Shown: piece after piece, positions 3,397 to 63,457 of the stretch
How positions within the stretch are numbered: position 1 is the first letter of the stretch
Layout: each line of letters opens with the position of its first letter
Program-made: the position numbers and the translations under genes
NCBI GenBank assembly: GCA_002269645.1
Contig: NIVC01000172.1
Span: 18,535-82,534, forward strand
Length of the DNA stretch: 64,000 bases
Reading direction: 5' to 3'
Origin: Macrostomum lignano
Taxonomy: Eukaryota
The notes under the pieces: model-generated
The model's input: only the letters and a program-made list of their open reading frames with translations
Databases searched by the model: none
Told to the model about the DNA's origin: nothing

Positions 3397-4776
3397 TATA
3401 GCTTTTTGCAGCCTATTTGGGCTCGAATTAGATTTAATCCAAGATATGCTTGCCAAAGTAACGGAGCTTTTGTCTATGGTAGCAAGGCTGGCACAGCAGC
3501 AGTTAATTTGGTCCAACAAGCATCAATTTGGTCCATAGCGGCTATGAAAGCCAATCACAAGTTAAAACTGTGTAATGCGATTTATTTGAGCAAATTTCAC
3601 TGTACCAACACAAGGTGACGTCAAAAATCTAATCTGCTTAACTATAGCAAAGTATAAAGTCAAAACACATGTTTGATGAAAAGAAGAAAAGCGTGTTAAA
3701 TTAACTTTTTTCCTTGCCATGCAAGTGGCCATGAAGCGCAGCATCAGCCTGTACCAACCTGAACTCTTTAAAGGTGTGATGGCAGCTGTAGCGGCATTGG
3801 CAATGCGGTGAAGCACTATGTACTCTCCATTGGCCAAGGGTGGTGTTTAGGAGGCGGCTGATCAAGCTCTAGTTGGTTGGCCGGGTCACTGAGCTCCTGT
3901 TTGATTGCAGCCTTCAGGCAAGAATAGACAGCCTTGACAGGATTTAGAAATGGGGAGTATGGTTGCAATGTGATGAGCTTGGATCCTGTCCTGATGTACT
4001 TCCGAAATGCTCCGTTATGAAACCGCGCATCATACAAAATGACGCGCATCTGTTGGGCATCCAGTCCATGAACTTTGAGTAGAGACTGCAGCAGTTGACT
4101 GATGGTCGGTAAAACCGCTTGCAGTACATTCACTTGCTGACCTCGACGACGACCACGACTTTGAGTCGAAATGCTAAATCCAGTCTCGTCCAGATAACTC
4201 GTCCGGGCTGTTGCGTACATGTACGAGCGTACTTCTGGAAGGTCAGCGTCTCTACCAAGATTTTCAGTGTTATCAGTCGCTTTTCCAGAGCTCTGCTGAT
4301 GGTCGAAATGCTGAAAAACAAATAGAACTGTTCTTTCAACTTCGGCTGCATTTTCTGCAACGTCAACAAAGGGTTTGTCTCAATTGCATCGAGTAGCAGT
4401 TGGACCTGAGGCTTCCGTAACTTGTTTTGGCGATTTCTGTCCCTCCGCAGACGATCTCTGCTTCCAGTGGTTTCAACACGCTGACAGATTCTTTAAAGCG
4501 TCTTTTCTTTGACACTCAGCAACTTTGCAATGTCCTTTAGGTGTTCACCTCCGTCCGATGCTTTGATCACAAGCTCATGGCGTTCGTTGGACAGTCTAGA
4601 GTATATGGTCTACGATTCCACTACTGATACTGCTCAGCAGTTTCAACAGTTTCAAATGAATCATTGCTTCTGTCCTCACTGCTTGTGTCAGATATGTCTA
4701 CATTAAAGTCTAGGGGTGAAAATATGGAGCTGCTATGGACAAAATTGATGCTTGTTGGATCAAATTAAATGCTGCT
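3397..4776 (-). mobile_element. Decayed IS630-Tc1-mariner transposon: left TIR plus frameshifted transposase
   Basis: Minus-strand fragments: HTH region (LKDIAKLLSVKEKTL...SISTISRAL), YLDETGF, DARFH, PYSPFLNPV. The ~140-bp left arm at 3397 matches the MITE arms at 8247 and 9103. The inner part of the right arm is at 4732-4776. Confidence 0.85.
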
Positions 4777-4789
4777 CTACAACACTTGC

Positions 4790-5525
4790 TCGTGTCTATG
4801 GTCTTGCAACACTCACTAGTGTCTATGGTCTTGCAACACTCACTAGTGTCTATGGTCTTGCAACAGTCGCTAGTGTTGCAACACTCACTAGTGTCTATGG
4901 TCTTGCAACAGTCGCTAGTGTCTATGGTCTTGCAACACTCGCAAGTGTTGCAACAGTCGCTAGTGTCTATGGTCTTGCAACACTCGCTAGTGTCTATGGT
5001 CTTGCAACAGTCGCTAGTGTCTATGGTCTTGCAACACTCGCTAGTGTTGCAACAGTCGCTAGTGTCTATGGTCTTGCAACACTCGCTAGTGTCTATGGTC
5101 TTGCAACAGTCGCTAGTGTCTATGGTCTTGCAACACTCGCTAGTGTCTATGGTCTTGCAACACTCGCTAGTGTCTATGGTCTTGCAACACTCGCTAGTGT
5201 CTATGGTCTTGCAACACTCGCTAGTGTCTATGGTCTTGCAACACTCGCTAGTGTCTATGGTCTTGCAACAGTCGCTAGTGTTGCAACAGTCGCTAGTGTC
5301 TATGGTCTTGCAACAGTCGCTAGTGTTGCAACACTCGCTAGTGTCTATGGTCTTGCAACAGTCGCTAGTGTTGCAACACTCACTAGTGTCTATGGTCTTG
5401 CAACAGTCGCTAGTATCTATGGTCTTGCAACACTCGCTAGTATCTATAGTCTTGCAACAGTCGCTAGTGTCTATGGTCTTGCAACAGTCGCTAGTGTCTA
5501 TGGTCTTGCAACACTTGCTAGTGTC
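4790..5525. repeat. 27-bp minisatellite GTGTCTATGGTCTTGCAACACTCGCTA with 18-bp short variants
   Basis: Tandem units read directly. The ORFs at 4735 and 4752 are translations of the repeat. Confidence 0.95.
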
Positions 5526-6025
5526 TGTTCACACTTTTCTTATTTGGAATTCTGTCGAATTTAATACAGTAGAAGCATGTGGTAGCACAGAAGAATAAGT
5601 GTCGCATTTGTTCAAAGTTGGTCGCCAATCAAAGCTTGAAATTTCAGTAAGTCAAATAGGTAGTAAAAATAAAAGACAATATGCCTTATATATTTTTAAC
5701 TATTGAATAATACTTAGAAGCGTGAGTTCTTGGTCTTTTTTCTGTTGTGGAACGCACAGCTTGTATTTTTGTTTAAAATGTAAAAAGCATAGCTTATTCG
5801 ATGGTACGCATTGCCGAAGTTCGAAACAGCAAGCAAAACTTTTAAGTCGATGGCTCAATGAGTTGAGTCGAGTGAGCAATGGAAGATTTATAATATTCCG
5901 GGCGAATATCGCGTGGAAGAACACTATTTTCTTAATTTATTACTTGCTAGCTTAGTAATTAAAATATTGATTAAGAATATGTTGGTTGGAAGTCACTGTC
6001 GAGAAGACTGTTACGCGACAGTCGC

Positions 6026-6368
6026 TTACAGGCCGGCCTTGTACACCAGGATGGCAAAGGGGCCGTTCTGGAAGTAGCCGAAGGTGCTCTTCTCGTGCGT
6101 CACGTAGCTGGAAAGTCAGGCGGCAATGAGTAGTTGAGTTTATTTATAGCTGATAAAATTTCAGAAGAAGCGCTGCGTGAAACTCTCACCTAGCGTAGTT
6201 GCGGCCAACGGTCACCTGCCAGGTGGGGGTGAACTTGCTGTCCAGCCTCTTCTTCAGGTTGCTGGCGATGCCATCGTCGTCCTTGTACTCGGCGCAGATC
6301 TCGTTGATCAGAGCGAGGACGTCCGGCTTCAGCTCGGGGGACATGTCACCCTTCTGGAACTGCGCCAT
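6026..6368 (-). CDS. Dynein light chain LC8-type protein, 86 aa, 2 exons
   Basis: Exons 6368-6190 and 6107-6026; intron AG|GTGAGA...TTTCCAG|C. Motifs IASNLKKRLDSKFTPTWQVTVGRNYASYVTHE and YFQNGPFAILVYK match the DLC family. Confidence 0.93.
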
Positions 6369-6457
6369 TCTGACTGAGTTGTTTGAGCTTGAGCTTGAAT
6401 GAGTTGCTTCAAAAATTCGAGTGGTGTGCGGTTCTGCACCGCGGCCCGAACGTCTTC

Positions 6458-6511
6458 ATTTTATATCGCCAGCGAGAGAAGCTTTGGGGTGCCCGCCAAG
6501 CCCGCCATTGG
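6458..6511 (-). promoter_or_regulatory. TATA box and CCAAT box of the dynein light chain gene
   Basis: Minus-strand TATAAAA near 6465-6459 and CCAAT at 6511-6507, upstream of the ATG at 6368. Confidence 0.6.
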
Positions 6512-7481
6512 TCGAGCCGCACCCACTACGCTGGGTCTTAGCTGCAGCTAAACTCCAGCTGGACTGGCCCCTCAGGCTGTTCAGCTGAGAATGCAGCCAG
6601 CTTGAAGCTAAAAACTCCTAGTCAGGAAATTTACCTCAGAGACTGGTCTGCGTTGAGCTGCATCTTTTTGTTTCTTCTTTTGTGCCGTTCTAACCCACCC
6701 TCCACCCGCAGTAGCGAGTGGTGCGAGGGCTGCGTCAACGGCGCGCGCCGCCCTGGGGCAACAGGCGAACCGGGTCACGCTGCCATTGTAGTCACTTCTG
6801 CAGGTAAAGTATGCACGCTCGCAGCCCCCGTGCTCTGGAATTCTCTTTTCTCTCTCTTTTGTGTCGCACAGCACAGTCTGAGTCTATGCTGAACTCACTT
6901 TGCTGCATTCCTGCGGCCCACAGCTGCTGTAGTAGTTGTAGCTGCTTTCCGAAAAGTGACCCAACCCTCCCTCCTCTTTCAGAGAGTTTGAATGAAGCTG
7001 AATGGGGCATATGCACTCTGCTCAATGAATATTCAATGAGTTAGAAAGGAAGCAAAGATGCAGTTTTGAAAGAGACTGGAATTTTCGGGCAAAAATTCCC
7101 CGTTATGCTCTTACGCTAGTAGTGTAGTTCAATATGTTTATAGTGGAATATCGATGACAACCCGTCATATGTACTTCTTATAAAGCCAGCAGATTTGATC
7201 ACCATCGCTGACTTCATAGTCCCTAAAAACTACAGTCCTCATCTTCCTCAGGCTGGCCGCAGACACCTCAGCTCGAAAGCGGTTTTCACGGGAGTTTGTG
7301 ATAGACGTTACGCTAGCTAATCCTGATGAAAAAAATAACGACGAAGAGTCTACCTCTACCTCTGAACCGAATATATAACTAACCATTGACACTAGTTCTG
7401 GCACATTGACACTAACTCAACAATTCCCAACTTCAGTTAACCTGAACGCGATTGAGCTGTGCTCTGAACGCGATCCTGATG

Positions 7482-7915
7482 GGTGGTGGCTGATCGTGAT
7501 GGACGGGCCACACTTTCATCGCGGGGTTGTGATTCACCAGCTGCAGCAGCGCATCTCAGTTCGCATCCTGCCAACCTACGCTCCATTTCTGAATCCGTCC
7601 GAGCTGGCCAACAGCGCTCTGAAGGCTAAAATTAAATGCCGCTTGGTCGAGACGGAATTGATGGAGAAGGAGGCTGCTCCTCCTGAAGACGTGATGCTGG
7701 AAGACTGGAGATTCATGCTAATGGAACGAGAAGCCCGCGCGGCCGTAGCTGAAACTATCACAGCAGACAAGGCGGCAGCGTGGGAGCTTCATTGCTCTCG
7801 TCTGTTCGGTTTGTGCATCGAAGGTCACCAATTTTCTCCAATTTTTGCATGCTACATAACTCAAAAGCTGGACCGTTTAAAATTAGCTTTCGATTCTGTT
7901 TGCGTTTGTATTTAG
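7482..7915 (+). pseudogene. IS630-Tc1-mariner DDE transposase C-terminal fragment
   Basis: WLIVMDGPHFH...LPTYAPFLNPSELANSALKAKIK; tail alignable by eye to the 3562-4220 fragment; no N-terminus. Confidence 0.8.
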
Positions 7916-8246
7916 TTTTTATCGTATTGTATTCAGTTCTTGACATTCTACAGTTTTATAGCTCATTGTCGTAAACTATGTCATAGACATTGTCATAGAA
8001 TATAGAAATAGGCGTGGAAAAGCACTGAATTCTAAACTTGGTTGGCTTTTTTGGCCTTTTTATGTCTATGGCCAAGAGTAGTGTCGATGCTAAATCAACG
8101 GAAAGGTTGGGAACACTCGCTGACTGCGCAAAGCGGATTCTCAAGGTTGGCTTTATTATCAACTAAACATTTAAGCACTCAAAACCAAGAATTGAATCCT
8201 ATATTATATGAATCGATCAACATCGCTTTCAGGAAGTCTATACTAA

Positions 8247-9103
8247 TATAGCTTTTTGTAGCCCATTTGTGCCTACGCACATTGAATTTAATCCAAAATG
8301 CGTTTGTCAATGTAATGGTGCTTTTGTCTATGGTAGACTGGCGAATGGCTCAGGAGCGTTTGGACCAAATTGATGCTTGTTGGACCAAATTGATGCTTGT
8401 TGGACCAAATTGATGCTTGTTGGACCAAATTGATGCTTGTTGGACCAAATTGATGCTTGTTGGACCAAATTGATGCTTGTTGGACCAAATTGATGCTTGT
8501 TGGACCAAATTGATGCTTGTTGGACCAAATTGATGCTTGTTGGACCAAATTGATGCTTGTTGGACCAAATTGATGCTTGTTGGACCAAATTGATGCTTGT
8601 TGGACCAAATTGATGCTTGTTGGACCAAATTGATGCTTGTTGGACCAAATTGATGCTTGTTGGACCAAATTGATGCTTGTTGGACCAAATTGATGCTTGT
8701 TGGACCAAATTGATGCTTGTTGGACCAAATTGATGCTTGTTGGACCAAATTGATGCTTGTTGGACCAAATTGATGCTTGTTGGACCAAATTGATGCTTGT
8801 TGGACCAAATTGATGCTTGTTGGACCAAATTGATGCTTGTTGGACCAAATTGATGCTTGTTGGACCAAATTGATGCTTGCTGGACCAAATTGATGCTTGT
8901 TGGACCAAATTGATGCTTGTTGGACCAAATTGATGCTTGTTGGACCAAATTGATGCTTGTTGGACCAAATTGATGCTTGTTGGACCAAATTAGATGCCGC
9001 TGTGCCAGCCTTGCTGCCATAGACAAAAGCTCCATTGCATTGGCAAACGTATCTTGGATTAAATTAAATGCGTGTAGGCCCAAATGGGCTGCAAAATACT
9101 ATA
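8247..9103. mobile_element. Non-autonomous Tc1-family MITE: ~100-bp inverted arms around a 20-bp tandem array
   Basis: TATAGCTTTTTGTAGCCCATTTG...TTTTGTCTATGG at left and CCATAGACAAAAG...CAAATGGGCTGCAAAATACTATA at right are inverted repeats. Confidence 0.85.
8361..8991. repeat. 20-bp tandem array TGGACCAAATTGATGCTTGT, about 31 near-identical units
   Basis: Read directly; one visible variant unit near 8880. Confidence 0.97.
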
Positions 9104-9451
9104 TTTATCTTTCTCATTTTCATAGCTCATAACTGTGGCGGTGTTTTATCATACGAGCTATCCTAGGAAATTTCAGAATCTGATGCAAACATTTGCGCCC
9201 AATTGAATGAATAAGTTTTGCAAATTTAAACTTGGCAGTTTAGCAGCTGCTGCAGCCGGGCTGTGAGGTTTTGCTGCATCCAACTCACAGCCCACACAGT
9301 TCCCATTTACGATTATCTTTTATCCCTAACCAAGTTTTTGATCAGCAAAAAATTCTCCAAAGAAGAGTTGGAAAATGAGGCCATGGAGTTTTTTGTCCAG
9401 AGTTGGCAAATTTTACAGATCTGGCTTTGTGCGACTGGCAACTCATGTTGA

Positions 9452-9725
9452 GGGGGTTGCAGCCTAGTGGTCAGAGCGTCGGACTCACGACTGAAAGGTC
9501 GGTGGTTCGACTCTCGAACCACTCGGAACAATTTGTGTCCTTGAGCAAGACACTTAACTCTGCATTGCTTCAGTTCATCCAGCTGTAAAATGGGTGCCAG
9601 CATTAGCTGGGTTTGAGGGTGTGGCGACCCAGCATTCCATGGACTGAACAGCCGTACGCAGCCTTCAGATGCGCCGCGCAACAGCTGCGGCTGAGCTGTC
9701 GGTTGCATCTGGCCATATCAGGGCA
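9452..9725 (+). mobile_element. tRNA-derived SINE (family A), near full length, CORE/V-like central domain
   Basis: A box TTGCAGCCTAGTGG, B box GGTTCGACTC, central GTGTCCTTGAGCAAGACACTTAACTC; related copies at 2630, 21491 and 63170. Confidence 0.88.
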
Positions 9726-10629
9726 GGTGTATTCAGTTAGTATTAGTTATTGTTGAGTTAATATTACATATACATATGCTTTTCGCTCTGAATAATTATA
9801 ATTCGTCAAAAAGCGCAAGAACTTTATGGATGACTGGGTATAATACTTCAAGTAGCACGAGTCTCTTTTTTCAGAACATTCTGCTGCCCGCTAAGACCAA
9901 ACTAAAACCAAACCACTCATGGAAAAGATAAATTTAGAATTCAACAATCTGCAGTCTATAGAGGTGTCAGAGTCCAATTACACAGAACAGGTACAAACCA
10001 AGCTTATAAGCAGATTAGCAATTAAAATTCACCTGCCTTCGCTATGCAAATCAACTAAACTACATGTTTTTTTTCAAATCAGTTGGAAATGAATTACAGT
10101 GAAGGGTAAAGATAAGGTAAATTGAACAAGTTAGAGAAACTCGTTAGGCAATTCATTAGATTTGCGTTGCAATCAACTTGTACAAATATTATCGTAACCA
10201 AGCTGATGACATTCACAGCACACGTGATTGCAGGCAAACCAGGTTGCTGCGAGATCAGCTCTATCTACCAGGGGCCGAACAGAGAGAATTTCGCTGCAAC
10301 TTTCACTGTGCGCTTTCCATGTCTGCGCACCGATCTGCACTCTAGAGTCTTCGGCTTGTCGGCAATACGCAATTCAAACGCGAGCTTGTTGGGCAAGTGC
10401 AGTTCACCCCTCGTCTCCAGTCACCTTGAACTAGCTGTATGCTAATAAGTGTGACGCTTTATATGCTGGTACCGCCCACCACTAGATAAGTGGAGAACAC
10501 CTAGCACATAGCAGAAAAGTCGGCTATAGTGAAGCCAAGGTTAAATCAGGCTGCTACGTAAAGCGCTCTCACCTTTTGGAAGCAGCAAAATAGACTCACC
10601 AAGCCGATACCGAACAGTATTCAGCAGCA

Positions 10630-12209
10630 ATGACTCAACGTCGCAGCTCCTCAGGCGTCACAGCCTTCCTCGCGTTCTCCTGCTTCTCCGCCTTTCTCGG
10701 CGCTGTCTGCTTCGGCTGGAGCACCGGGGTGATCAACAATCCAAAGGCGAGCATCGTCCGCCTGATCAACGAGTCCACAGCGGCTCACTACGGTGTCCAG
10801 CTGACCGCGTACACAGCCGACGTGCTGTTCTCCGTGGTCGTGTCGATGTTCGCCGTCGGCGGCATGATCGGCGCTCTGGTCAGCGGCTACTGGGCCGAGC
10901 GGCTGGGCCGCAGGAACGGCATGCTCGTCAACTCTGGCGTTGGCGTGGTGGCCGCTCTCCTGATGTCGGTGGCGAAACCGGCTGGAAGTTTTGAGATGCT
11001 GATCATCGGCCGGCTGCTGATCGGCTTCTGCAGCGCTCTGTACACGGGGCTGGTGCCGATCTACCTGGCTGAGATCGCGCCCAGACAGCTGCGTGGCGGC
11101 ATCGGCGTGCTGAACCAGCTCGGCGTGGTGACCGGCCTGCTGCTGTCGCAAGCGCTCAGCATCCAGCAGGCACTGGGCGGGCCGCAGCTCTGGCCGATTT
11201 TGTTCGCTATTGCCGGCCTGCCAAGCGTCTTGCAGCTCGCCTGCCTGCCGGCCTGCCTGGAGACGCCGCGGCACCTGCTGCTCACCAGACACGACGAAGC
11301 TGCAGCTCGCTCGGCTCTGTGCCAGCTGCGCGGCGTCGACAAAGGAGACAGCGAGGACAAGTCCATCGACGAGGAGTTGGCGGAGATTCGCTCCGAGTTG
11401 GACGGCCAAACCGGTCAGGAGCAGCGGCAGGGCTGCTCGCGCCTCGCTGCCCAGTGGCGGCCTCTAATTGTGGGGATTGTGCTGCACCTGTCCCAGCAGT
11501 GGTCAGGCATCAACGTCATCTTCTACTACTCAGCTGATCTGTTCCAGGGCGTCGGAGCATCAGAGTCGGCGGCACAGCTGGCCACTATCGCGGTCGGTGC
11601 CATCATGGTGGTGATGACGCTCGTGTCCGTGCCGCTCATGGACCGGGCTGGCCGGCGGACTCTTCACCTGGCGGGCCTGGCGGGCATCACGGTGGCCTCC
11701 GCTCTCTTCACTGTGCTGTTCAGCGTCGGCCAGCAGCAGAAAGTCAACGGCGCGGTGCCAGCCGGCCTCGCTGGGGGAGCATCGCATCCGCGCTGCTCGT
11801 CGTGGTGTTCTTCGCCATCGGTCCCGGCTCGATCCCCTGGATGATGATGTCGGAGATGTTCCCGCAGGACTCTCGCTCAGCGGCTAACGCTGTCGGCGTG
11901 CTGGTGAACTGGCTGGCGAACTTCACCGTCGGTATGTTGTTCCCCGTGCTACTGGACGGCCTCGGCTCGCTGGTGTTCGTGCCGTTCACCGTCCTGACGG
12001 CCGCGTTCCTTGCCCTCCTGTTCCTGCGCATGCCGGAGACCAAAGGTCGCAGCATCGATCAAATCGTTGCGTCGTTCAGTCGCCATGGAGACCGGGGTGG
12101 AGGCTCAGTAAGTCCCGAAATTGCGGAGCCAGCAAGCGAGGCGACCGTGATTCTCGGCAGCACAGGCCTGAACAGTGGAAGACCTGGCAGCGGCGGCAGC
12201 TACACCTAA
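10630..12209 (+). CDS. Intronless facilitated hexose transporter (SLC2A/GLUT class I-like), ~526 aa, one frameshift at G5 11773-11777
   Basis: Motifs GWSTGVIN, ERLGRRNG, IIGRLLIG, EIAP..LRG, QQWSGINVIFYYS, DRAGRR, FFAIGPGSIPW, PETKGRS. One added base in the G run joins the two ORFs (LAGGSIASALLVVVFF). Confidence 0.92.
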
Positions 12210-16136: not shown

Positions 16137-19100
16137 TCAGCCGACCAAGTCAGTCCGGTCGGCCGTCCGTAGGTACAGCGCCCGCTTCCACTGTCCTTCG
16201 TTGGCTGGCTCTGCCGCCTCGGCCAGCCGGAAGTGGTTGCCGGTCGTGACGCTCTCCGGCAGGTTCCTGTCAGCCAGCCGCCTATAGCTGTCAGCCGTGT
16301 CAGCGCTCAGCCGGTCGTCCAGGAACACCAGGATTCGCCGCGTCACTCGCGTCACCTGCTGCAGCTCGATCAGATTGTCTAGCAGGCGTCGGTTATCATG
16401 GTTGTCTTCCTGGAACCAGCGCGCCATGGAGGGTGTCAGCAGGATGACGAACTGACGCGTGCACTTGAGAAACCGAGGCTTGGCGGCTTCGGAAGCGCCG
16501 GCCAGTACGCGCTCGAAAGTGTCGGGAAAAGCGTTGACCAGCGACTGCTGGCAGGAGGCCAACAGCAGGCGGCGGCTGGAGCACTCAGCGATGATGGCGC
16601 GCAGAAGGGCGTCAGCGCTGGCTTCCTCTGGTGCTGCCGGTAGCGCCAGCAGCAGCACGTCGCAGCCGTATCCGCCCGAGTGAGGCGGCCATTCTGGAAG
16701 CGGCTGCTGCCCGGGCTGCGTCAGCTGGCCTGCGATGGGAGAAAAATTGTTTTCAGTAAATTTAAATATGGGTGAAAGGCTTGGGCAGGGCAATGGTGAG
16801 GATATTTCATCGGGAGGAAGCGCCAGCACCAGGGGCACCAGCACCAGGGGCGCCAGCACCAGGGGCGCCAGCGCCAGGGGCGCCAGCACCAGGGGCGCCA
16901 GAACCAGGGGCGCCAGTGCTGTCGTATAGGTTTTTTACAGCTCTTTGCTTCCTTGTTGTCAGGAATTTTTAGTACATTTTAAGTGTCTTGGAAGGTTGAT
17001 TGATTGGCCGTCAGCTTAAAAACGAGTCCATAGAACTAGCATATTGAATTCTAGTAGCCATTTATAAATACGTCTATTTTAGTTTTATCCACCCGTCTGC
17101 CTCACTGGCCAGGTCCATTGCGCAGACGTCACCCAATAGGGAGGCTCCCTCCCGGCTTCCGGTAGCGGTCGCGGCAGCCATCTCGTCCGTCTCCTCGTCG
17201 TTGGTCGCCTCGCCGCCCGGAGACAGGAACGCCTTCAGTGCCGGACCGGCCGCGACAGCGCGATTGAATTTGGCCCGACAGACCAGCGAAGCCACCTTGT
17301 ACTCCCAGTCGATGCTGCCGTGCTTCACGGACCGGCTGAACAGAGCGGCGACCGCGCCGGAGACCTGGCGACCGTAGGAGTGTCGCAGTTGCTCGTGCTC
17401 GCTGGACACGCCGCGGGAGAGCTTCAGTAGCACGATGTAGTCGGCAGGGTTGCGACCGCTGGCTGAAATTTCGCTGACCGCCTGCAGCAGGTCGTGGAAG
17501 CCGGAGTGAAGAAACCGCTTGGACAACAGGACTACAACGGTGCGACTGAACCGGACGCCGTCCGAAACGGACTCGAAGCGAGTCTGCTGCATGAACCCGC
17601 TGCCCCTGTGCACGGCGTAGTCCATCGAGTGCGAGCTGCTCAGTCGGTAGAATCGGAACGCCGAGTCCAGATCGCGGAGCACCCCGACCAGTGTGGACTC
17701 ATCCTGACGAATGTTCGGAGTACGAGTACGTATGAGTACGTACGGAGTACGTATGAATGCCCATATTGATACGAAATCTTACCTGTTGATCGGCCAGAAA
17801 GAAGACGTCAAACTCGAATTCGTCGCCATTACCGCAGCGAGCAAGAGCTCCGGCTTCGCTGGAGTCCATTAGCCGTTTTCTTTGCATGTACTTTAGGATG
17901 AAGAACATTTCAACCGCTCCGTACACTTTGTGCCGCTTGGTAATCAGCGCTAGAAGCAGAAGACTGCCAAGGATTGAGGCTACGGTAATCAGCATCCACT
18001 TGACCGTGGCTTGACGCATCGCTTCCTGATAGGTTTCCATGGCGGCGCAGAGCTTACGAAGTTTTCCTCCATCATCGACTGAGTAGGGCGCGCTCAAGTT
18101 TAACGGAAGTCCCTTGTTGCTCCAACCGGAATTCAAGAACTCTCTGTACGCCTTATTGAACTCTGAGTCATTGAAGCTGCAACTGATGAGACTGAAGTCG
18201 CTAACAAACTGCCCGGCTACAGATATGTTGATGAGCTGCTGCTGGAAGGTGAGCCACTCAGAGCGGCACGAGCACACCCACGCATTGCCGCGCAAAGTCA
18301 AGTTTGAAAGTCGGCTAAACGATTTGAAGATGTTCATATCGAATGGTCGGATGAGATTGCTGCTCAAATCGAGAGTCGAAAGCGTCTTCTCCAGGCCGGA
18401 GAATGTAAACTGACTAATTATTCGCAGTCGGTTTCCCCTTAGTTCCAGCACCTCGATGTTGTACTGGGTTCCGTATCTAGTCAAGTTGAAGGCGTGATCT
18501 TCGATCTCCAAGATGTGGCTATAGCACATGCTGAGGTAGCGCAGCTTCGTCGAAGGTGACTCCTTGCCCTTCGCCCATCGGAGCATGCCAACTGAGAACT
18601 TGCCAGCAATGCCAATCATTGAGATCCTGTTTAGCGACAGCTTCTTCACCGGTATTCGGATAGGAAAGTTGAACGGATCGGCGTGCATGTTGTCGCAGTT
18701 GATGTCAGCGTAGGACCAGTCGCGAGAGTGCCAGCACAGGCAGGAGCTGATGCACCTGGTACGGCATCCCGTGCTTGAGTTCTTAAAACAGTACCTTCTA
18801 GGCACTTCAACCTCAATGTAGCCATAGTAGGGACAAATAAAGTTACTTGGCCTGGATGCTCTCAAACTTTTATTTGTTTTTTGGGTAACATTCTCGTGCA
18901 TGAAAAATTCACAGTGGTAGTCCCTGGTCTCATTGTATGAGAACTGCGGATATTTGTACACTTCTGAGCACGCTTTCGTATGCTTCTGAAGCTCGATTTC
19001 TGAAACAGCATAAACGTGGTTACAGGTGCACAGCTGGGTTACTTTCTGTCCAGATATGTACAGCATAACCCTGGAGGCTTGGTTAGTCCTATTGCTCATC

Positions 19101-20921
19101 ATGAAGTAGTCGGCATTCCAAACTTTGATGCTGTTGCTTCTCAAGTCCAGGCTGCGCAGGCTGGTGAGGTTTACAAAACAGCCGCAGTCAATGTCGCTAA
19201 TCAGGTTGTCATTCAGCCCAATAAAAGTAAGAAAAGGTGACTGAGGAATGCTCCGGAGAGAAATCACTTTGAGATCATTGTTCCGAACCCAAAGTTTCTC
19301 CAAGCGGGCCAGCGACGCAAGCTCAAAGCTCTGCAACCAGTTATAATCGAGGTTTAGCTCCACGAGACTCGAAGGAAGTAGCGAATTCTTGAATGCCATC
19401 GCATTTAGAGACTTGATCCGGTTGTGCGACAGATCCAGGTATTGAAGATTTACCTAGAATAGGAATTGTAAATGCAGCACATGGCTATATCGTAAGTAGA
19501 GCACTAAAGCAACTTCTGGTTGCCAGTTGGGATTTTCTGACACGGTATTACGCGTACACGGATACATGTATGTGCAAAGAGCCCCGTGACCACCACTCTA
19601 TGCCCTGGAGGAGTCCTCCTACTCTTAGGTGATAAAACACACAAGCCCCAGGCCAGAATTCCCTGCTTGATTTCAAGGTCAGAAGGCGTGACATTATGCA
19701 AAAACTTACTTCAAACCACGGCGAAACGACCCCGATAAACGGGATTCGATTGTAGGACAGGTCCAGCTTTCTCAGGCTGTCCTTGGGCCCGCGAAACCAG
19801 TAGCACCGGGCCAATTCGTAAGAAGGCGGCCAGCACATGTCGTAGTCGTACAGGCTTGAAATCTCATTGTGGCTCAAATCTAATTCGCGAAGATTGCCAA
19901 GTAGGGAGACTAAATTGGGTATTTTAGTGAGCCGGTTGTAGGAGAAGTTCAGAGTGGCTAGCTGGCTGGGTATCAGCTCCCACTTCTCGGACTCTGCAGA
20001 TTCGTCACGAATGCGCCGCTTGGCAAAGCTGAACGTGAAGCCGCCTCCGGTGGTGCTTTCGTCGCTAGCCTTGAATAGCATCTTCTGCCAGGTGAACCGG
20101 CCGTACTGCTTCTTCAGGCGCACCAGCCAGTCCGTTTCGTTGCGTAGGGGCACCGTGCCATTGGCAATAGCGTCATCCAGGTAATGATTCAACGAGTCCA
20201 AAACTATGTCGTAGATATTCTCGGCCGCCTCGGTCAGGTTGGAATGGCTCACAGTGAATTGCTGTAGGGACATTGCTCCAACCATGTTCGACACGCTAAT
20301 CACGTTCAGGGGAGTATCGATGAGCTGCATATTGACCAGGTTGAAGCACTTCATATTGAGATAGATTGGGAAGTACACGACAATGCAGCTGCGCAGAACC
20401 AGAGACATGAGCTTGCAGCTGCTGGGCTTGAAACTGCTGGTGTTGTACTCGAGCCTCTCCGTGTACTGAGCCGCCAGTCGCGGCTTTATCGGGCCGAACA
20501 TCGCCAGCTCGACGCTCTCGTGCGTGCTGACGTTTTCGTGGATCAGCTGGCCGAAGCTGAGTAAGTCGAAGTGAATTCTACAGCCGATCAGCTCGACGTG
20601 GTAAGGCGGATAGAAGTGCTCGTGCCGGAATGTCATCTCGTGCAGGTCGATCTCGCTGCTGAGGGTGAAGTTGCCGCAGTCGATGGACAGGCTGGATATA
20701 ATCTTGAATGGCAGCTCCTTGCAGTCGAAACCAACGGCGCTGGAGTTCTTCGCTTCAAGCAGGCGGCAGCGAACATTTTTGCTGGCCAGCTCTTGCTGGC
20801 AAATGCAAGCCACTCTGGTATCGTTCAGGCGCACGTACAGCGGCGTAGGAGCGTCATCAGCGGTGTCGTCTAAAGCAGCCGAGGCTGCTATCAATACGAA
20901 AACCAAAGTCAGTGTTCTCAT
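16137..20921 (-). CDS. Toll-like receptor, multi-cysteine-cluster type, ~1357 aa, with a TIR and a second TIR-like domain
   Basis: Exons 20921-19710, 19453-17783, 17703-17106, 16729-16137; GT-AG sites with matching phases 0, 0, 1. Signal peptide, LRRs (LATLNFSYNRLTKIP, LQYLDLSHNRI), internal Cys clusters (LCTC...CPY...CISSCLC), LRRCT GNAWVCSC, TM WMLITVASILGSLLLLALIT, TIR FDVFFL...SRTVVVLLSKRFLHS. Confidence 0.88.
16820..16918. repeat. 15-bp GC-rich repeat (GGGGCGCCAGCACCA) in TLR intron 3
   Basis: About 6 tandem units read directly. Confidence 0.85.
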
Positions 20922-21490
20922 CACTGAGGGCCGGGTTTAGCAGAAGCGGTTTGCTATCGCAGAAAATATGATCTATTCATTTATATGTTTTAAGCTGGCA
21001 GCCAAAGTTTATATCTTGCAGCCTGAGGTTGATAAATAATCGAGCCACTATTGCACTGTTTATAGCAGTCGTGTAGATTCCATGCGAAGCCCCCAGTCTG
21101 AGACAGACATGCTGCCGGAAGAGCCGCAGGTTGCAGTTCGTTTCGTCAGATTTTGTCTCGCAATGTTCCATAGCGACAAGCAATATATACTTGCGACTGC
21201 ACTGGCACATTCTGCAGCCCCTTGTAAACTTTATGACGAATTTGTTAGTGTCTTGTTTCTAATTTTAAAGCTAGTTCAGCTCTGGCAGAACTAGCATGAA
21301 ATTATTTTTATCAGTTCGAATTTGCTGGCTGAAGCAGCAGCTTCCAGTGATGAGCAAATCTCGTGCGACTTATTTCACAGGCAAGTCTTAGTCTCAATGC
21401 CAAGTTTACATTACAAATGGATCCAGGCAGAGGGGTGGGCGATCACCCAACCCAAACGAGACAGAGCATACACACGCGTTGGGGGGGGGG

Positions 21491-21538
21491 GGCTTTCAGT
21501 CGTGAGTTCGACGCTCTAACCACTAGACTGCAACCCCC
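21491..21538 (-). mobile_element. SINE family A, 5' head fragment
   Basis: CTTTCAGTCGTGAGTTCGACGCTCTAACCACTAGACTGCAACCCCC is the reverse complement of the 9452 head. Confidence 0.75.
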
Positions 21539-21807
21539 TAAAAGTATAACTACAGCTAAAACACATTTTAGAAGCAATGTCGAAGCAAAACTCGGACACC
21601 TTTCCCAAATTTTTATTGAGGCTTCGCAGAAAGTACTCGGATTACATGTACATCAGAAGTACATCATTGTAGCTCGGACAATTTCAAATTTGCGATGGAC
21701 TCCGATAAACTGAACAAGTGCAATAAAAATTGACTGTCAGCCCGCACTGTACTTATATTCAGGGTGCAGCACAAATATGAATTGTCAATCCGGTGACGCA
21801 GCACCGG

Positions 21808-24804
21808 TCAGTACCACATGGGCCACCACATCAGCGGCGAGAACAGCAGGGCTCCGGTGGCGAAGCCCAGGGCCGCGTCACCGGCGCAGCAGGAGTGACA
21901 GCCGTAGCAGCTGTGCCGGTTGCAGTAGGGCGGCCTGCCGTCGTCGTACACAACGATGGTGTTGCCATCTGGATGGTAGATCACCTGCGCCGGCACCTGG
22001 CGGCCGTTCTCAACGTAGACGACTCGTTCCCGACGGTAGGGCGAGTCGCCGTTCGTGTAGGCCGGCGGCGGCGAGAACCGGCCGGGCTGGGGGCGAACCT
22101 GGCGACCGCTGGCCACGGCCTCCGTCCAGGCCACCCGATCGTCGGTGTTCTCGGCGCAGAACTCCCAGGTCTTCTCCGGCGTCTCCAGGGCGAACAGAGC
22201 GTCAACCGGGGCGCCGTCTGGCGGCGAGACGTTGCATTTGTCGCCAACTAGGACTCGCTGCACCTGGAAATGATTTCACGAAGGCTGAGGCAACTCTGCC
22301 CATTCCGCAGACTCCTGGGCACGCACTCACACACACGCTCACACAGGGTGTACATCCGCCTTAGGGGTCGGCCCTCATAAGTTTCCCCTCTTGGTATAGT
22401 TAGCACAATAATGACTATTGACTATAAATGTTAGGCCAAAAAGTTACTACCCAAGCCATATATTCTAGAAAACAACTGTGCCAAAAGCCGGGCTGACAGC
22501 ACCTCCAGCGGCAGCACTATGGTGTCCTCGGCGGTGCCGCTTCGCGGCGACTCGAAGTAGCTCAGATCGCCGTTGCAGTCGATCACCACCCAGCTGCGCT
22601 TCCAGCGGCGTAGAAAGTCACCTGGTCAAAGGAGCGCCAGCGAGACAAAGTTTTTGAGGACAACTCAACAGGCTTTGACAGATTTTTAGATCGTGTAAGT
22701 TTTGAAGGCTTATTAAATAACAAGAAAGCAATATGCAAAATTAAAATGATAGTTATCGTTTCTGCCGCAGATCAAATGCAATTATTGATTTTTGAAATAA
22801 TGATGGAATATTGATTTGCTATCTCCGCAGTGCAATTTTTATAGGAAATCGGCCTGTGGATTGCAACCAAGAGACAGGGACTCCAACCAAGAGACAGGGA
22901 CTCCAACCAAGAGACAGGGATTCCAACCAAGAGACAGGGACTCCAACCAAGAGACAGGGATTCCAACCAAGAGACAGGGATTCCAACCAAGAGACATGGA
23001 TTCCAACCAAGAGACAGGGATTCCAACCAAGAGACAGGGATTCCAACCAAGAGACAGGGACTCCAACCAAGAGACAGGGACTCCAACCAAGAGACAGGGA
23101 CTCCAACCAAGAGACAGGGACTCCAACCAAGAGACAGGGATTCCAACCAAGAGACAGGGACTCCAACCAAGAGACAGGGATTCCAACCAAGAGACAGGGA
23201 TTCCAACCAAGAGACAGGGATTCCAACCAAGAGACAGGGATTCCAACCAAGAGACAGGGATTCCAACCAAGAGACAGGGATTCCAACCAAGAGACAGGGA
23301 TTCCAACCAAGAGACAGGGATTCCAACCAAGAGACATGGATTCCAACCAAGAGACAGGGATTCCAACCAAGAGACAGGGATTCCAACCAAGAGACAGGGA
23401 TTCCAACCAAGAGACAGGGATTCCAACCAAGAGACAGGGATTCCAACCAAGAGACAGGGATTCCAACCAAGAGACAGGGACTCCAATCAAGAGACAGGGA
23501 TTCCAACCAAGAGACAGGGACTCCAACCAAGAGACAGGGACTCCAACCAAGAGACAGGGATTCCAACCAAGAGACAGGGATTCCAACCAAGAGACAGGGA
23601 CTCCAACCAAGAGACAGGGATTCCAACCAAGAGACAGGGACTCCAACCAAGAGACAGGGATTCCAACCAAGAGACAGGGATTCCAACCAAGAGACAGGGA
23701 TTCCAACCAAGAGACAGGGATTCCAACCAAGAGACAGGGATTCCAACCAAGAGACAGGGATTCCAACCAAGAGACATGGATTCCAACCAAGAGACAGGGA
23801 TTCCAACCAAGAGACAGGGATTCCAACCAAGAGACAGGGATTCCAACCAAGAGACAGGGATTCCAACCAAGAGACAGGGATTCCAACCAAGAGACAGGGA
23901 TTCCAACCAAGAGACAGGGATTCCAACCAAGAGACAGGGATTCCAACCAAGAGACAGGGATTCCAACCAAGAGACAGGGACTCCAACCAAGAGACAGGGA
24001 TTCCAACCAAGAGACAGGGACTCCAACCAAGAGACAGGGACTCCAACCAAGAGACAGGGATTCCAACCAAGAGACAGGGACTCCAACCAAGAGACAGGGA
24101 CTCCAACCAAGAGACAGGGATTCCAACCAAGAGACAGGGACTCCAACCAAGAGACAGGGATTCCAACCAAGAGACAGGGATTCCAACCAAGAGACAGGGA
24201 CTCCAACCAAGAGACAGGGATTCCAACCAAGAGACAGGGATTCCAACCAAGAGACAGGGACTCCAACCAAGAGACAGGGACTTCAACCAAGAGACAGGGA
24301 TTCCATCCAAGAGACAGGGATTCCAACCAAGAGACAAGGACCAACCAAGAGACAGGGATTCCAACCAAGAGACAAGGACCAACCAAGAGACAGGGACTCC
24401 AACCAAGAGACAGGGACTTCAACCAAGAGACAGGGATTCCATCCAAGAGACAGGGATTCCAACCAAGAGACAAGGACCAACCAAGAGACAGGGATTCCAA
24501 CCAAGAGACAGGGATTCCATCCAAGAGACAGGGACTCCAACCAAGAGACAAGGACCAACCAAGAGACAGGGACTCCAACCAAGAGACAGGGATTCCAACC
24601 AAGAGACAGGGATTCCAACCAAGAGACAGGGGGCGCCTACCAAGAGCCAAATACTGGCGCTGCTTAGGGCGCCTCTCCAATTAAAACTCTGGTCGATAAA
24701 GCACTCAAGAAAACTCAACTTTAAAATCGCAGTTCCGATAGAGTAAACTCACTTTTTCGAAACAGCCAGCCAGACTTCAGAATCCTGTCGTTACACGACG
24801 CCAT
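21808..24804 (-). CDS. PLEKHB: PH-domain protein, PLEKHB/evectin-like, 208 aa, 3 coding exons
   Basis: Exons 24804-24753, 22621-22503, 22263-21808 (phases 1, 0). ILKSGWLFRKSDFLRRWKRSW...FCAENTDDRVAW and C-terminal GDAALGFATGALLFSPLMWW match evectins. Confidence 0.88.
22860..24630. repeat. 20-bp minisatellite CCAACCAAGAGACAGGGATT (~88 units) in PLEKHB intron 1
   Basis: Read directly; the 480-620-aa ORFs here are repeat translations. Confidence 0.97.
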
Positions 24805-30599: not shown

Positions 30600-33500
30600 G
30601 GGCGATTCAGAAGACAGTCTAACTGGGCGATTCTAAATGCAGTTTGGGGCGATTCTAAATGCAGTCTGAGGGCGATTCTAAATGCAGTCTAAGGGCGATT
30701 CTGAATGCAGTCTAAGGGCGATTCTAAATGCAGTCTAAGGGCGATTCTAAATGCAGTCTGAGGGCGATTCTAAATGCAGTCTAAGGGCGATTCTAAATGC
30801 AGTCTGAGGGCGATTCTAAATGCAGTCTAAGGGCGATTCTAAATGCAGTCCAAGGGCGATTCTAAATGCAGTCTGAGGGCGATTCTAAATGCAGTCTGAG
30901 GGCGATTCTAAATGCAGTCCAAGAGCGATTCTAAATGCAGTCCAAGGGCGATTCTGAATGCAGTCTGAGGGCGATTCTAAATTGAGGGCGATTCTAAATG
31001 CAGTCCAAGGGCGATTCTAAATGCAGTCCAAGGGCGATTCTGAATGCAGTCTGAGGGCGATTCTAAATGCAGTCTGAGGGCGATTCTAAATGCAGTCTAA
31101 GGGCGATTCTAAATGCAGTCTAAGGGCGATTCTAAATGTAGTCTGAGGGCGATTCTAAATGCAGTCTGAGGGCGATTCTAAATGCAGTCTGAGGGCGATT
31201 CTAAATTGAGGGCGATTCTAAATGCAGTCTAAGGGCGATTCTAAATGCAGTCCAAGGGCGATTCTGAATGCAGTCTGAGGGCGATTCTAAATTGAGGGCG
31301 ATTTTAAATGCAGTCCAAGGGCGATTCTGAATGCAGTCTGAGGGCGATTCTAAATGCAGTCTAAGGGCGATTCTAAATGCAGTCTGAGGGCGACTCTAAA
31401 TGCAGTCTGAGGGCGATTCTAAATGCAGTCTGAGGGCGATTCTAAATGCAGTCTAAGGGCGATTCTAAATGCAGTCTAAGGGCGATTCTAAATGCAGTCT
31501 GAGGGCGATTCTAAATGCAGTCTGAGGGCGATTCTAAATGCAGTCTAAGGGCGATTCTAAATGCAGTCTAAGGGCGATTCTAAATGCAGCCAAAGGGCGA
31601 TTCTAAATGCAGTCTGAGGGCGATTCTAAATGTAGTCAAAGGGCGATTCTAAATGCAGTCTGAGGGCGATTCTAAATGCAGTCTAAGGGCGATTCTAAAT
31701 GCAGTCTGAGGGCGATTCTAAATGCAGTCTGAGGGCGATTCTAAATGCAGTCTGAGGGCGATTCTAAATGCAGTCTAAGGGCGATTCTAAATGCAGTCTG
31801 AGGGCGATTCTAAATGCAGTCTGAGGGCGATTTTAAATGCAGTCTAAGGGCGATTTTAAATGCAGTCTGAGGGCGATTCTAAATGCAGTCTGAGGGCGAT
31901 TTTAAATGCAGTCTAAGGGCGATTCTAAATGCAGTCTAAGGGCGATTCTAAATGCAGTCTGAGGGCGATTCTAAATGCAGTCTGAGGGCGATTTTAAATG
32001 CAGTCTAAGGGCGATTCTAAATGCAGTCTGAGGGCGATTCTAAATGCAGTCTAAGGGCGATTTTAAATGCAGTCTGAGGGCGATTTTAAATGCAGTCTGA
32101 GGGCGATTCTAAATGCAGTCTAAGGGCGATTCTAAATGCAGTCTAAGGGCGATTCTAAATGTAGTCTGAGGGCGATTCTAAATGCAGTCTGAGGGCGATT
32201 CTAAATGCAGTCTGAGGGCGATTCTAAATGCAGTCTGAGGGCGATTCTGAATGCAGTCTAAGGGCGATTCTAAATGTAGTCTGAGGGCGATTCTAAATGC
32301 AGTCTGAGGGCGATTCTAAATGCAGTCTGAGGGCGATTCTAAATGCAGTCTGAGGGCGATTCTAAATGCAGTCTAAGGGCGATTCTAAATGCAGTCTAAG
32401 GGCGATTCTAAATGTAGTCTGAGGGCGATTCTAAATGCAGTCTGAGGGCGATTCTAAATGCAGTCTGAGGGCGATTCTAAATGCAGTCTGAGGGCGATTC
32501 TGAATGCAGTCTAAGGGCGATTCTAAATGTAGTCTGAGGGCGATTCTAAATTGAGGGCGATTCTAAATGCAGTCTGAGGGCGATTCTAAATGCAGTCTAA
32601 GGGCGATTCTAAATGCAGTCTGAGGGCGATTCTAAATGCAGTCTAACGGCGATTCTAAATGCAGTCTAAGGGCGATTCTAAATGCAGTCTGAAGGCGATT
32701 CTAAATGCAGTCTAAGGGCGATTCTAAATGCAATCTGAGGGCGATTCTAAATGCAGTCTGAGGGCGATTCTAAATGCAGTCTAAGGGCGATTCTAAATGC
32801 AGTCTGAGGGCGATTCTAAATGCAGTCTGAGGGCGATTCTAAATGCAGTCTGAGGGCGATTCTAAATCCAGTCTGAGGGCGATTTTAAATGCAGTCTAAG
32901 GGCGATTCTAAATGCAGTCTGAGGGCGATTCTAAATGCAGTCTGAGGGCGATTCTAAATGCAGTCTAAGGGCGATTCTAAATGCAGTCTGAGGGCGATTC
33001 TAAATGCAGTCTGAGGGCGATTCTAAATGCAGTCTGAGGGCGATTCTAAATGCAGTCTGAGGGCGATTCTAAATGCAGTGTGAGGGCGATTCTAAATGCA
33101 GTCTGAGGGCGATTCTAAATGCAGTCTGAGGGCGATTCTAAATGCAGTCTGAGGGCGATTCTAAATGCAGTCTAAGGGCGATTCTAAATCCAGTCTGAGG
33201 GCGATTTTAAATGCAGTCTAAGGGCGATTCTAAATGCAGTCTGAGGGCGATTCTAAATGCAGTCTGAGGGCGATTCTAAATGCAGTCTAAGGGCGATTCT
33301 AAATGCAGTCTGAGGGCGATTCTAAATGCAGTCTGAGGGCGATTCTAAATGCAGTCTGAGGGCGATTTTAAATGCAGTCTGAGGGCGATTCTAAATGCAG
33401 TCTAAGGGCGATTCTAAATGCAGTCTGAGGGCGATTCTAAATGCAGTCTAAGGGCGATTCTAAATGCAGTCTGAGGGCGATTCTAAATGCAGTCTGAGGG

Positions 33501-35021: not shown

Positions 35022-35384
35022 AGACATTGCGTGCAATAAGTACTTGTGGCTTTTAACTCAAATTATGTGAAAATACGTTTGTAGTGCCAGAAAGAATCAG
35101 CAGAAGGCGTGTCAATTTTTTATTTAAAAACTCCATAAAATCTTCTTTTAGCCATATAAAAGTGAAAAAATGAATAAATTGAGAAAAAATTTGGACAAAC
35201 AATCAGCGGAGAAAATCAAAGCTGATTTCTAAGAAATATTGGGTATTTCAAAAACTTAAGGCGCTTACTTTAGAAAGGGTAAAACACAGGTGTTTCTTTT
35301 TTCTATGTAGTAATATTTGCCACTTGCTACTTAATTCAATGAACAGTAGTTTTTAAAAATCGTTTAATCACAGGAAGAAAACGC

Positions 35385-50800: not shown

Positions 50801-51349
50801 ACAACCAGCAGCGGCGTAGTGGAGGCGCCAGAAGACGCGGCATATTCCATCACGGCGCGGCGCGCTTGGCGCCAGGCGCTAAAATCTTCGTCAAAATCGG
50901 CGCCATCCTGATCGGCATCCTCGCAGCTGATTGCCGCCATCCGCAGCAGACGTCGACGAACCCGAAGATGACCGGCAGCGGCTTCAATCAGCAGCGGCAG
51001 CACTGCCGGCTGAAACGCTTGCTGCTGGGCAAATTCAATGCGGCTGCGAGCCGAGAACAGAAACTCCTCGGCTGTGGAGCACCGGAGCAGGGCGGAGTCG
51101 TCAAAGGATTCCAGAGCATCACTGTCGGCGTCTTCAAAGGCCGCCCCGGTGGCCCAGGCGGTTGGCAGGCCGCCCAGACCGGCGATGGCGGCAGCGGCGG
51201 CTCGCATTGAAGTCAGCAGGGCGGCCGCCTCGGAGCGCCAGGCAGCTGCGGCTGCGGCGGCTGCGCGTTCGTCAGCGCTGAGATATTCTGGGTGGCGACT
51301 GCTCACCTGGGAGGAATGAAATGGTGACAGTTGGACAGGTAGTCTAGTC

Positions 51350-63169: not shown

Positions 63170-63457
63170 GATTGCAACTGCCTCGATTGGGCGAGATGTA
63201 CAACCGACAGCTCAGCCGCAGCCATTGCGCGGCGCATCTGAAGGCTGAGTACGGCTGTTCAGTTTAAGGACTGGGGGGGTCGCCACACACCCTCAATTAC
63301 CCCAGCTAATGCTGGGACCCACTTTACAGCTCGGTGAAGTGAAGCAATGCAGAGTTAAGTGTCTTGCTCAAGGATTCAAATTGTTCCAGTGGGATCGAGA
63401 ATCGAACCCCCGACCTTCAAGTCGCAAGTCCGACGCTCTAACCACTAGGCTGCAACC
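63170..63457 (-). mobile_element. tRNA-derived SINE (family A), full-length copy
   Basis: Reverse complement aligns along its length with 9452-9725. Confidence 0.88.

Follow-up and report, generated by a model that had tools for sequence, protein, structure and literature searches.

A probable Toll-type receptor with a divergent TIR domain and a lineage-specific C-terminal domain in the flatworm Macrostomum lignano

Toll-like receptors (TLRs) have been defined as proteins that combine at least one leucine-rich repeat (LRR), a transmembrane helix and a TIR domain in a single protein, and the largest survey using this definition, in which a TIR hidden Markov model (HMM) served as the first filter, scored 0 TLRs in the flatworm Macrostomum lignano (PMC8609888). 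In planarians, TIR proteins have been found, none of them joined to LRRs (PMC7958881). Platyhelminthes are usually treated as having lost TLRs, and we found no published report of a Macrostomum TLR in the searchable literature. Here we analyzed a 64,000-nucleotide stretch of M. lignano contig NIVC01000172.1 (positions 18,535 to 82,534, forward strand; hereafter the window), whose minus strand holds a four-exon gene at 20921-16137. In the reading that we favor and consider probable, this gene encodes a type-I membrane receptor built like a Toll/TLR, with a divergent TIR and a lineage-specific C-terminal domain.

Among described systems, the closest in layout are the P-type or multiple-cysteine-cluster (mcc) Tolls, such as Drosophila Toll and the spiralian mccTLRs. 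The M. lignano receptor resembles these in its predicted signal peptide, its two LRR blocks split by an LRRCT-like plus LRRNT-like cysteine cluster, its membrane-proximal LRRCT-like cluster, its single predicted transmembrane helix and a cytoplasmic TIR-type domain about 40 amino acids (aa) past the membrane, in which box 1 ([FY]D[AV]F) and the strand-C motif (SR..[IV][IV]VLS..F[LI].S) are recognizable. Unlike them, it has a TIR that scores far below family thresholds, with a degenerate BB loop that lacks RD..(P)G, a leucine (Leu1034) in place of the glutamate after strand C and DWEY in place of the box-3 FW, as well as an N-terminal 300 aa that are only loosely LRR-like and a C-terminal domain without a homologue outside M. 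lignano. Twin-TIR P-type Tolls have been described in bivalves, such as Hyriopsis HcToll-2 and two Crassostrea gigas loci (Gerdol et al. 2017, as summarized in PMC5845394 and PMC8181103), and the M. lignano receptor shares with them an apparently P-type ectodomain and an extra domain C-terminal to the first TIR, whereas both of their domains are recognizable TIRs and its own second domain was without TIR signal throughout our tests. Compared with the flatworm LRR-only and TIR-only 'TLR-like' proteins (PMC8609888, PMC7958881), which belong to the same phylum and draw on the same domain vocabulary, it carries LRRs, transmembrane helix and TIR-type domain in one chain, and would fall under the survey definition given above if its TIR call is accepted.

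Gene model, gene copies and the exon-3/exon-4 junction

Reading of the sequence and reconstruction of the coding sequence (CDS) gave four open segments separated by canonical GT..AG introns in phases 0, 0 and 1 (Table 1), whose joined CDS of 4074 nt is in frame and encodes a product of 1357 aa. This translation is identical at all 1357 residues to PAA88883.1 (BOX15_Mlig015932g2, UniRef A0A267GS98) from M. lignano assembly Mlig_3_7 (GCA_002269645.1), which bears out both the four phase-matched exons with their splice sites and the macrostomid host proposed in an earlier sequence-only reading of this DNA. The encoded protein runs from a signal peptide through a divided LRR ectodomain, a transmembrane helix, a divergent TIR-type domain and a low-complexity linker to a C-terminal domain of about 150 aa.

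A phmmer search with the 448 cytoplasmic aa against 1.84 billion representative proteins matched 2 proteins, namely the receptor's own cluster (1357 aa, 100% identical across the query) and one distant paralogue (A0A1I8HBV3, 1068 aa), the only relative of this region outside its own cluster, for which a UniRef entry derived from gene prediction on an older assembly is the sole record. The 90% cluster of the former holds PAA67356.1 (BOX15_Mlig015932g1), which differs from our four-exon translation at 4 aa, together with PAA88883.1, while older-assembly fragments in it carry the UniProt name 'Protein toll'. PAA67356.1 and PAA88883.1 both bear the automatic UniProt name 'TIR domain-containing protein', which is given to both paralogues, and the GenBank entry dates from 2017. 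Since the search returned a single paralogue, a deep alignment could not be built, and both AlphaFold2 (AF2) models discussed below are accordingly of low confidence. A homologue-index search with the cytoplasmic region or a two-sequence TIR alignment returned no match, self included, so that this index is uninformative for the gene, and tblastn revealed no second copy or paralogue elsewhere in the window.

The g1 copy lies on contig NIVC01001489.1 of the same assembly, and both it and the g2 copy analyzed here have a PH-domain gene on their upstream side and a sugar transporter on their downstream side. Because the same genes flank both copies, the duplication was segmental or whole-chromosome and not a retrocopy, and g1 and g2 are duplicated segments of a partly duplicated genome; the locus is one of these two near-identical Mlig015932 copies, to which the distant paralogue is added. 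The paralogue shares all cysteine clusters, the transmembrane helix and the TIR motifs FS..VVV.LS.RFL, GRNP..IV.L.LS and DWEY. In its N-terminal LRR region about 100 aa are missing, and its model ends shortly past the linker without a counterpart of exon 4, a contrast that may be genuine or may come from truncation of the predicted gene.

The sequence-only reading had joined the donor at 17106 in phase to exon 4, and the deposited CDS contains exactly this 17106/16729 junction. For Mlig_3_7, the GenBank annotation consists of the 'coregenes' subset taken from a genome-guided transcriptome rather than of ab initio predictions, with transcripts drawn from STAR, StringTie and TACO together with de novo assembly and CDS called by TransDecoder (PMC5730564). 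Some assembled transcript therefore contained the junction, which is thereby confirmed indirectly. If the 17106 donor is left unspliced, the frame ends at a stop at 17074-17076 inside intron 3 (final residues DLASEADGWIKLK), giving a product of 1170 aa.

The gene is expressed, as judged by this transcript-derived annotation, and is selectively constrained: 14 of the 18 substitutions between g1 and g2 exons are synonymous and 4 non-synonymous (binomial p = 1.3e-6 versus the neutral expectation), with 0 indels. Within exon 4 the corresponding counts are 5 and 2 (pS 0.032, pN 0.0046, pN/pS about 0.14, p = 0.016), again with 0 indels and with both replacements in the C-terminal tail, and its third-codon-position GC content (0.79) is like that of exon 3 (0.81). 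In intron 3, 7 substitutions have accumulated and the minisatellite differs in length by 240 nt (g1 longer; a 15-bp unit, GCGCCAGCACCAGGG, present 6.5 times at 16820-16916 in the window), with GT and AG kept in both copies. We conclude from these patterns that exon 4 belongs to the receptor protein as a translated, constrained part. These results argue against the alternative that exon 4 is a foreign piece brought in by the assembly of a polycistronic or chimeric transcript, M. lignano being a trans-splicing species, with the true product stopping at 17074 after a single TIR. That alternative draws on the frequency of polycistronic transcription units in M. lignano, which were cut computationally (PMC5730564), on the repeats in intron 3 and on the paralogue model, which stops about where exon 3 does and lacks the second domain. 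We nonetheless regard it as highly improbable, given a canonical, in-phase junction that survived the divergence of the surrounding intron, the synonymous excess and codon composition of exon 4, and a first in-frame exon-4 ATG (M1262) that lies mid-domain, so that exon 4 is not a stand-alone gene; the paralogue record, as an older-assembly prediction, may itself be a read-through truncation.

That exon 4 is expressed as a trans-spliced gene of its own was also considered and is ruled out, as the lack of any in-frame ATG upstream of M1262 makes it impossible. Trans-splicing as such is common in M. lignano (PMC5730564), and the sequence just ahead of the receptor start codon (20922-20935, ...CCCTCAG/TGATG) places an AG 2 bases before the ATG that could be a spliced-leader trans-splice acceptor. 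The 'open reading frame' (ORF) at 16137-16889, which runs through the intron 3 minisatellite, is an artifact of the open frame 5' of the acceptor.

Ectodomain and first cytoplasmic domain

Within the ectodomain, Pfam detects LRR families only (LRR_8 4e-29, LRR_4 1.6e-23, LRR_1 3.5e-11), and 15 LxxLxLxxNxL-type matches fall in its mature part (17 regular-expression matches in aa 1-900, minus one in the signal peptide and one overlapping an adjacent repeat), which together place LRRs on the extracellular side, albeit only loosely so in the N-terminal 300 aa. The hydrophobic N-terminus MRTLTLVFVLIAASAAL is a predicted signal peptide, and the hydropathy profile has only one strong peak (Kyte-Doolittle 19-residue maximum 2.44 at aa 891), corresponding to a single predicted transmembrane helix between the LRRs and the TIR-type domain. 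The cysteine clusters are all conserved in the paralogue at 30% identity over 840 aa, with CIYGCRCYHDDGWDISDLDC as the counterpart of the internal LRRNT-like cluster. More than one LRRCT and an internal LRRNT, as read from the cysteine pattern, suggest an ectodomain of the multiple-cysteine-cluster, protostome type. The signal peptide, LRRs, cysteine clusters, transmembrane segment and TIR-type domain named in the sequence-only reading were thus recovered by Pfam, hydropathy, cysteine patterns and the TIR tests described next, and the motifs it quoted (FDVFFL, SRTVVVLLSKRFLHS, CDVLLLA, RQFVILLTPS and RRILVFLD) are all present.

The first cytoplasmic domain begins about 40 aa after the transmembrane helix, the usual place of a TIR. 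Using a reference set of 20 insect Toll-type TIR sequences, all positive for Pfam PF01582, we found that a custom Toll-TIR HMM scores this domain at 13.5 bits, a value reached by 0 of 2000 composition-matched shuffles, the best of which attained 6.0 bits (a margin of 7.5 bits); the paralogue's domain scores 2.5 bits, with 11 of 2000 shuffles as high. Aligned as a pair, the two paralogues match the insect Toll TIR profile in hhalign (probability 74%, E = 2.8e-5) in a register that runs from box 1 to strand C, pairing FDVFF with YDAFISY, the B-strand His, and SRTVVVLLSKRFL with SRRTIIVLSxNFL. An AF2 model built from this two-sequence alignment was compared with PDB structures by Foldseek, and ranks 1-8 are all TIRs, of animal, plant and bacterial origin (Cat1, TRIF, L7, MAL, two entries of MyD88, and L6; best probability 0.96, TM-score 0.46-0.48), a ranking that the model's low confidence (predicted local distance difference test, pLDDT, 40) makes suggestive only.

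Several results weigh against reading the gene as a Toll-type receptor. Its TIR evidence is sub-threshold throughout: the Pfam TIR model reaches 11.8 bits against a gathering cut-off of 21.3 bits (E = 0.21 over 24,736 models, with only the strand-C motif matched), the HMM and hhalign matches span only the N-terminal 60% of a TIR, and phmmer recovered no canonical TIR for this domain among 1.84e9 representatives or in the PDB. On the extracellular side, the Pfam LRRNT and LRRCT models have no match, so that assignment to the multiple-cysteine-cluster class is evidence of cysteine pattern only, and the best PDB sequence matches of the ectodomain are the generic LRR proteins IGFALS, LGR4 and LRRC32; mosquito Toll5A, TLR3, TLR8 and TLR4 are among the matches without being singled out, and sequence similarity alone therefore does not mark the ectodomain as Toll. 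The junction evidence is indirect, coming from an annotation built from transcripts rather than from the reads themselves. PDB sequence searches returned only chance matches with the cysteine-cluster region (CdtA) and with the two-sequence TIR profile (YpkA), and neither cytoplasmic domain had a match in NCBIfam or PADLOC.

Taken at face value, the low Pfam score, the paralogue's cytoplasmic domain with no Pfam TIR match at E<=1, the empty phmmer searches and the poor model would fit an LRR-only 'TLR-like' protein, whose cytoplasmic region is no TIR and resembles one by chance or by convergence on an alpha/beta pattern. We consider this quite unlikely, as the Pfam result corresponds to a nominal p of about 1e-5 if TIR is taken as a single pre-specified family, the independent Toll-TIR HMM exceeds every one of 2000 shuffles, hhalign places box 1 and strand C in register (E = 2.8e-5), 8 of 8 top Foldseek matches are TIRs, and the domain sits exactly where a TIR is expected. 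With moderate confidence, then, domain 1 is a TIR homologue related to Toll TIRs, and the evidence as a whole leans towards a cytoplasmic TIR in this receptor.

The same domain departs from functional TIR signatures in two places. Neither RDxxPG nor RDWxxGE is present at the BB loop, where HSMDYAVHRGSG aligns with the Toll H-ERDW-vGE and the aligned segment SHSMDYAVHRGSG retains only D and a G (PESFLYSD in the paralogue), as the sequence-only reading had remarked of its first TIR. Opposite the invariant Toll Glu (E of 'lEF'), domain 1 has Leu1034 and its counterpart in the paralogue a Cys, which speaks against NADase chemistry for domain 1; the suggestion that this TIR may be enzymatic consequently appears unlikely on the basis of the alignment.

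The exon-4 domain

Exon 4 encodes a domain that the sequence-only reading took for a second TIR, on the strength of the motifs CDVLLLA (aa 1183-1189), RQFVILLTPS (1252-1261) and RRILVFLD (1291-1298). None of our searches bore this out. Against Pfam at E<=10, with TIR, TIR_2 and SEFIR included, the domain has no match, nor does it in NCBIfam or PADLOC at the same threshold; among the 1.84 billion representatives, phmmer recovered nothing beyond the domain's own 90% cluster; and PDB sequences yielded chance CTF3 matches only. Its Toll-TIR HMM score of -1.7 bits is equalled or exceeded by 333 of 2000 shuffles, and its hhalign probability is 0.25% in comparison with the Toll TIR profile and 0.07% in comparison with domain 1. 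A single-sequence AF2 model (pLDDT 46) shows alternating strands and helices, and its Foldseek matches are Rossmann-type methyltransferases and GNATs (TM-score <= 0.33) with no TIRs among them, a comparison that is uninformative at this pLDDT. An origin of the exon-4 domain by internal duplication of domain 1 was rejected on the hhalign probability of 0.07%.

A twin-TIR receptor, in which the exon-4 domain would be a second, cryptic TIR-fold domain serving as a built-in adaptor or NADase, therefore finds no support in sequence, with the fold comparison indecisive on a low-confidence model. Its appeal lies in a TIR-like order of elements (CDVLLLA, helix, RRLLLA, helix, RQFVILLT, helix, RRILVFLD, helix, and a W-containing C-terminal helix), read from sequence and matched by DSSP assignments on the AF2 model, in a best but non-significant hhalign alignment with domain 1 in which strands C and D each fall opposite the strand of the same letter, and in the twin-TIR bivalve Tolls mentioned above. 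The strand-helix alternation is real but fits any flavodoxin- or Rossmann-like fold, and we judge this interpretation unlikely; the twin-TIR and enzymatic-TIR proposals are best set aside pending stronger structural evidence. Two tandem TIRs would not in any case be without precedent in a Toll, as twin-TIR receptors form an established subtype in bivalves. As far as these comparisons reach, the exon-4 domain appears to be a lineage-specific orphan of about 150 aa, encoded in its own terminal exon and without detectable TIR similarity.

A further, rather doubtful possibility is that the exon-4 domain is an unrecognized signaling module on a flatworm Toll-type receptor, with the Toll lineage retained at the platyhelminth base. 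Such a module could be a TIR fold that has diverged past sequence recognition, in which case a twin-TIR receptor would have evolved independently of the molluscan ones, or it could be a novel effector or adaptor domain of alpha/beta type, standing in for the adaptor recruitment that depends on a BB loop and is missing here. If this were true, the gene and its paralogue would show that the Toll lineage was kept at the base of Platyhelminthes (Macrostomorpha) and not lost in the phylum's ancestor.

Returning to the favored reading of a Toll-type receptor with one divergent TIR and an orphan C-terminal domain, the protein would presumably work like other Toll-type receptors, with ligand-driven dimerization of the ectodomain bringing the TIRs together and the paired TIRs acting as an assembly scaffold rather than as a NADase. 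The C-terminal domain may then be a regulatory or partner-docking extension. Drosophila Toll-family receptors and several insect Tolls carry a C-terminal extension after the TIR, in a position comparable to that of the exon-4 domain.

Genomic surroundings and implications for flatworm Toll-like receptors

Table 1. Features of the receptor gene and of the rest of the window (positions in the window unless another contig is named)
Feature	Positions	Strand	Details
Exon 1	19710..20921	-	aa 1-404; ATG at 20921; donor GTAAGT; signal peptide, Cys-rich N-terminal cap, LRRs first irregular then regular
Predicted signal peptide	20871-20921	-	aa 1-17
Intron 1	19454..19709	-	256 nt, GTAAGT...TCTAG, phase 0; identical in second gene copy
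Exon 2	17783..19453	-	aa 405-961; acceptor TCTAG, donor GTAAGA; LRR block 1, Cys clusters, LRR block 2, membrane-proximal LRRCT, transmembrane helix
Exon 2 end		-	juxtamembrane segment and first strand of the putative TIR (FDVFFLADQQ)
LRRCT-like Cys cluster 1	18911..19030	-	C546-x-C548...C566...C585 (aa 546-585); closes LRR block 1; pattern read from sequence
LRRNT-like Cys cluster	18695..18790	-	C626, C634, C638-x3-C642-x-C644-x12-C657; CISSCLCWHSRDWSYADINC; opens LRR block 2
Membrane-proximal LRRCT (Cys pattern)	18047..18274	-	GNAWVC798SC800...C829...C873 (aa 798-873); GNPWHCSC in paralogue
Single predicted transmembrane helix	17936..17998	-	aa 890-910, WMLITVASILGSLLLLALITK, then basic RHK
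Putative divergent TIR	17299..17818	-	aa 950-1096, split by intron 2
Motifs of the putative TIR			FDVFFL box 1 (aa 952-957), degenerate BB loop, SRTVVVLLSKRFLHS strand C (aa 1014-1028), YIVLLKL strand D, DWEY
Intron 2	17704..17782	-	79 nt, phase 0; cuts TIR after strand A
Exon 3	17106..17703	-	aa 962-1160 + 1 nt; acceptor GTCAG, donor CA/GTGAGG; rest of divergent TIR (to about aa 1096, SIDWEY), then Ala/Glu/Thr-rich linker
Intron 3	16730..17105	-	376 nt, phase 1, GTGAGG...TCGCAG
Exon 4	16137..16729	-	aa 1161-1357; acceptor TCGCAG; stop TGA at 16137-16139
Exon-4 orphan domain core	16221-16664	-	aa 1183-1330, alpha/beta-patterned
GLUT-type sugar transporter	10630-12209	+	Sugar_tr 7e-82; coding region in the window is two ORFs overlapping at 11802-11844
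PH-domain gene	21808-22263	-	flanks receptor
Counterparts on NIVC01001489.1 of sugar transporter and PH-domain gene	18970-20550 and 6191-9116		locus of the g1 copy
STAND/NACHT-like P-loop NTPase ORF	50596-51306	-	Pfam NPHP3_N 2.9e-5, AAA_22, nSTAND_NTPase5
ORFs flanking the STAND ORF	42212-43753, 44501-45001, 48921-49421, 52043-52516	-	no Pfam match; minisatellites between
Ankyrin-repeat protein with COR-A domain	58419-60899	+	Ank_2 1.2e-41
Death domain	61064-61777	+	1.5e-14; after ankyrin ORF
piggyBac-type transposase remnant	39706-41064	+	DDE_Tnp_1_7, 3e-42; two ORFs
DDE_3 (Tc1/pogo-like) fragment	3816-4220	-	
DDE_3 (Tc1/pogo-like) fragment	7406-7915	+	
Interspersed repeat, four copies	2628-2745, 9448-9735, 21493-21542, 63169-63457		up to about 290 bp; 85-92% identity
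Minisatellite arrays (examples)	4780-5526, 8360-8997, 22858-24631, 30625-35022, 46668-48612		period 12-43 bp, often >1 kb
23-bp minisatellite array	30625-35022		193 copies

Elsewhere in the window, the STAND NTPase ORF and its flanking same-strand ORFs may belong to one large multi-exon STAND (NLR-like) gene, and the ankyrin/COR-A and Death ORFs look like a DAPK/ROCO-like death-domain gene; together with the TLR-like gene these span about 45.6 kb (16137-61777). One fragment of the interspersed repeat lies about 570 bp upstream of the receptor start codon. This repeat holds a tRNA-T-arm-like GGTTCGAA-type segment that is negative in ARAGORN and Rfam, and neither tRNA nor Rfam matches were found anywhere in the window. 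Minisatellite arrays are very abundant throughout and create many long spurious ORFs on both strands.

With respect to the surveys, the zero count for M. lignano listed in PMC8609888 agrees with the absence of TLRs that the sequence-only reading had mentioned, and its description of the gene as an overlooked TLR holds in part. That count missed this TLR-like receptor gene, presumably because its TIR lies below curated HMM thresholds, so that HMM-based surveys scored M. lignano as having no TLRs; its sequence stands in public databases with a machine label as TIR-containing, so that the gene itself was not unrecorded. LRRs, transmembrane helix and TIR-type domain in one chain are the very combination by which surveys defined a TLR and which they did not find, and an early-branching flatworm here keeps at least one such LRR-TM-TIR-type protein. 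As its TIR falls below HMM cut-offs, the TLR 'loss' ascribed to Platyhelminthes may partly be extreme divergence, and presence/absence scoring based on thresholds needs revisiting. The transgenic tractability of M. lignano makes the receptor, its BB loop and its orphan domain testable in immunity, development and regeneration. The value of this locus thus lies in offering a probable counter-example to the view that flatworms have no TLRs, together with a tractable case of extreme TIR divergence.

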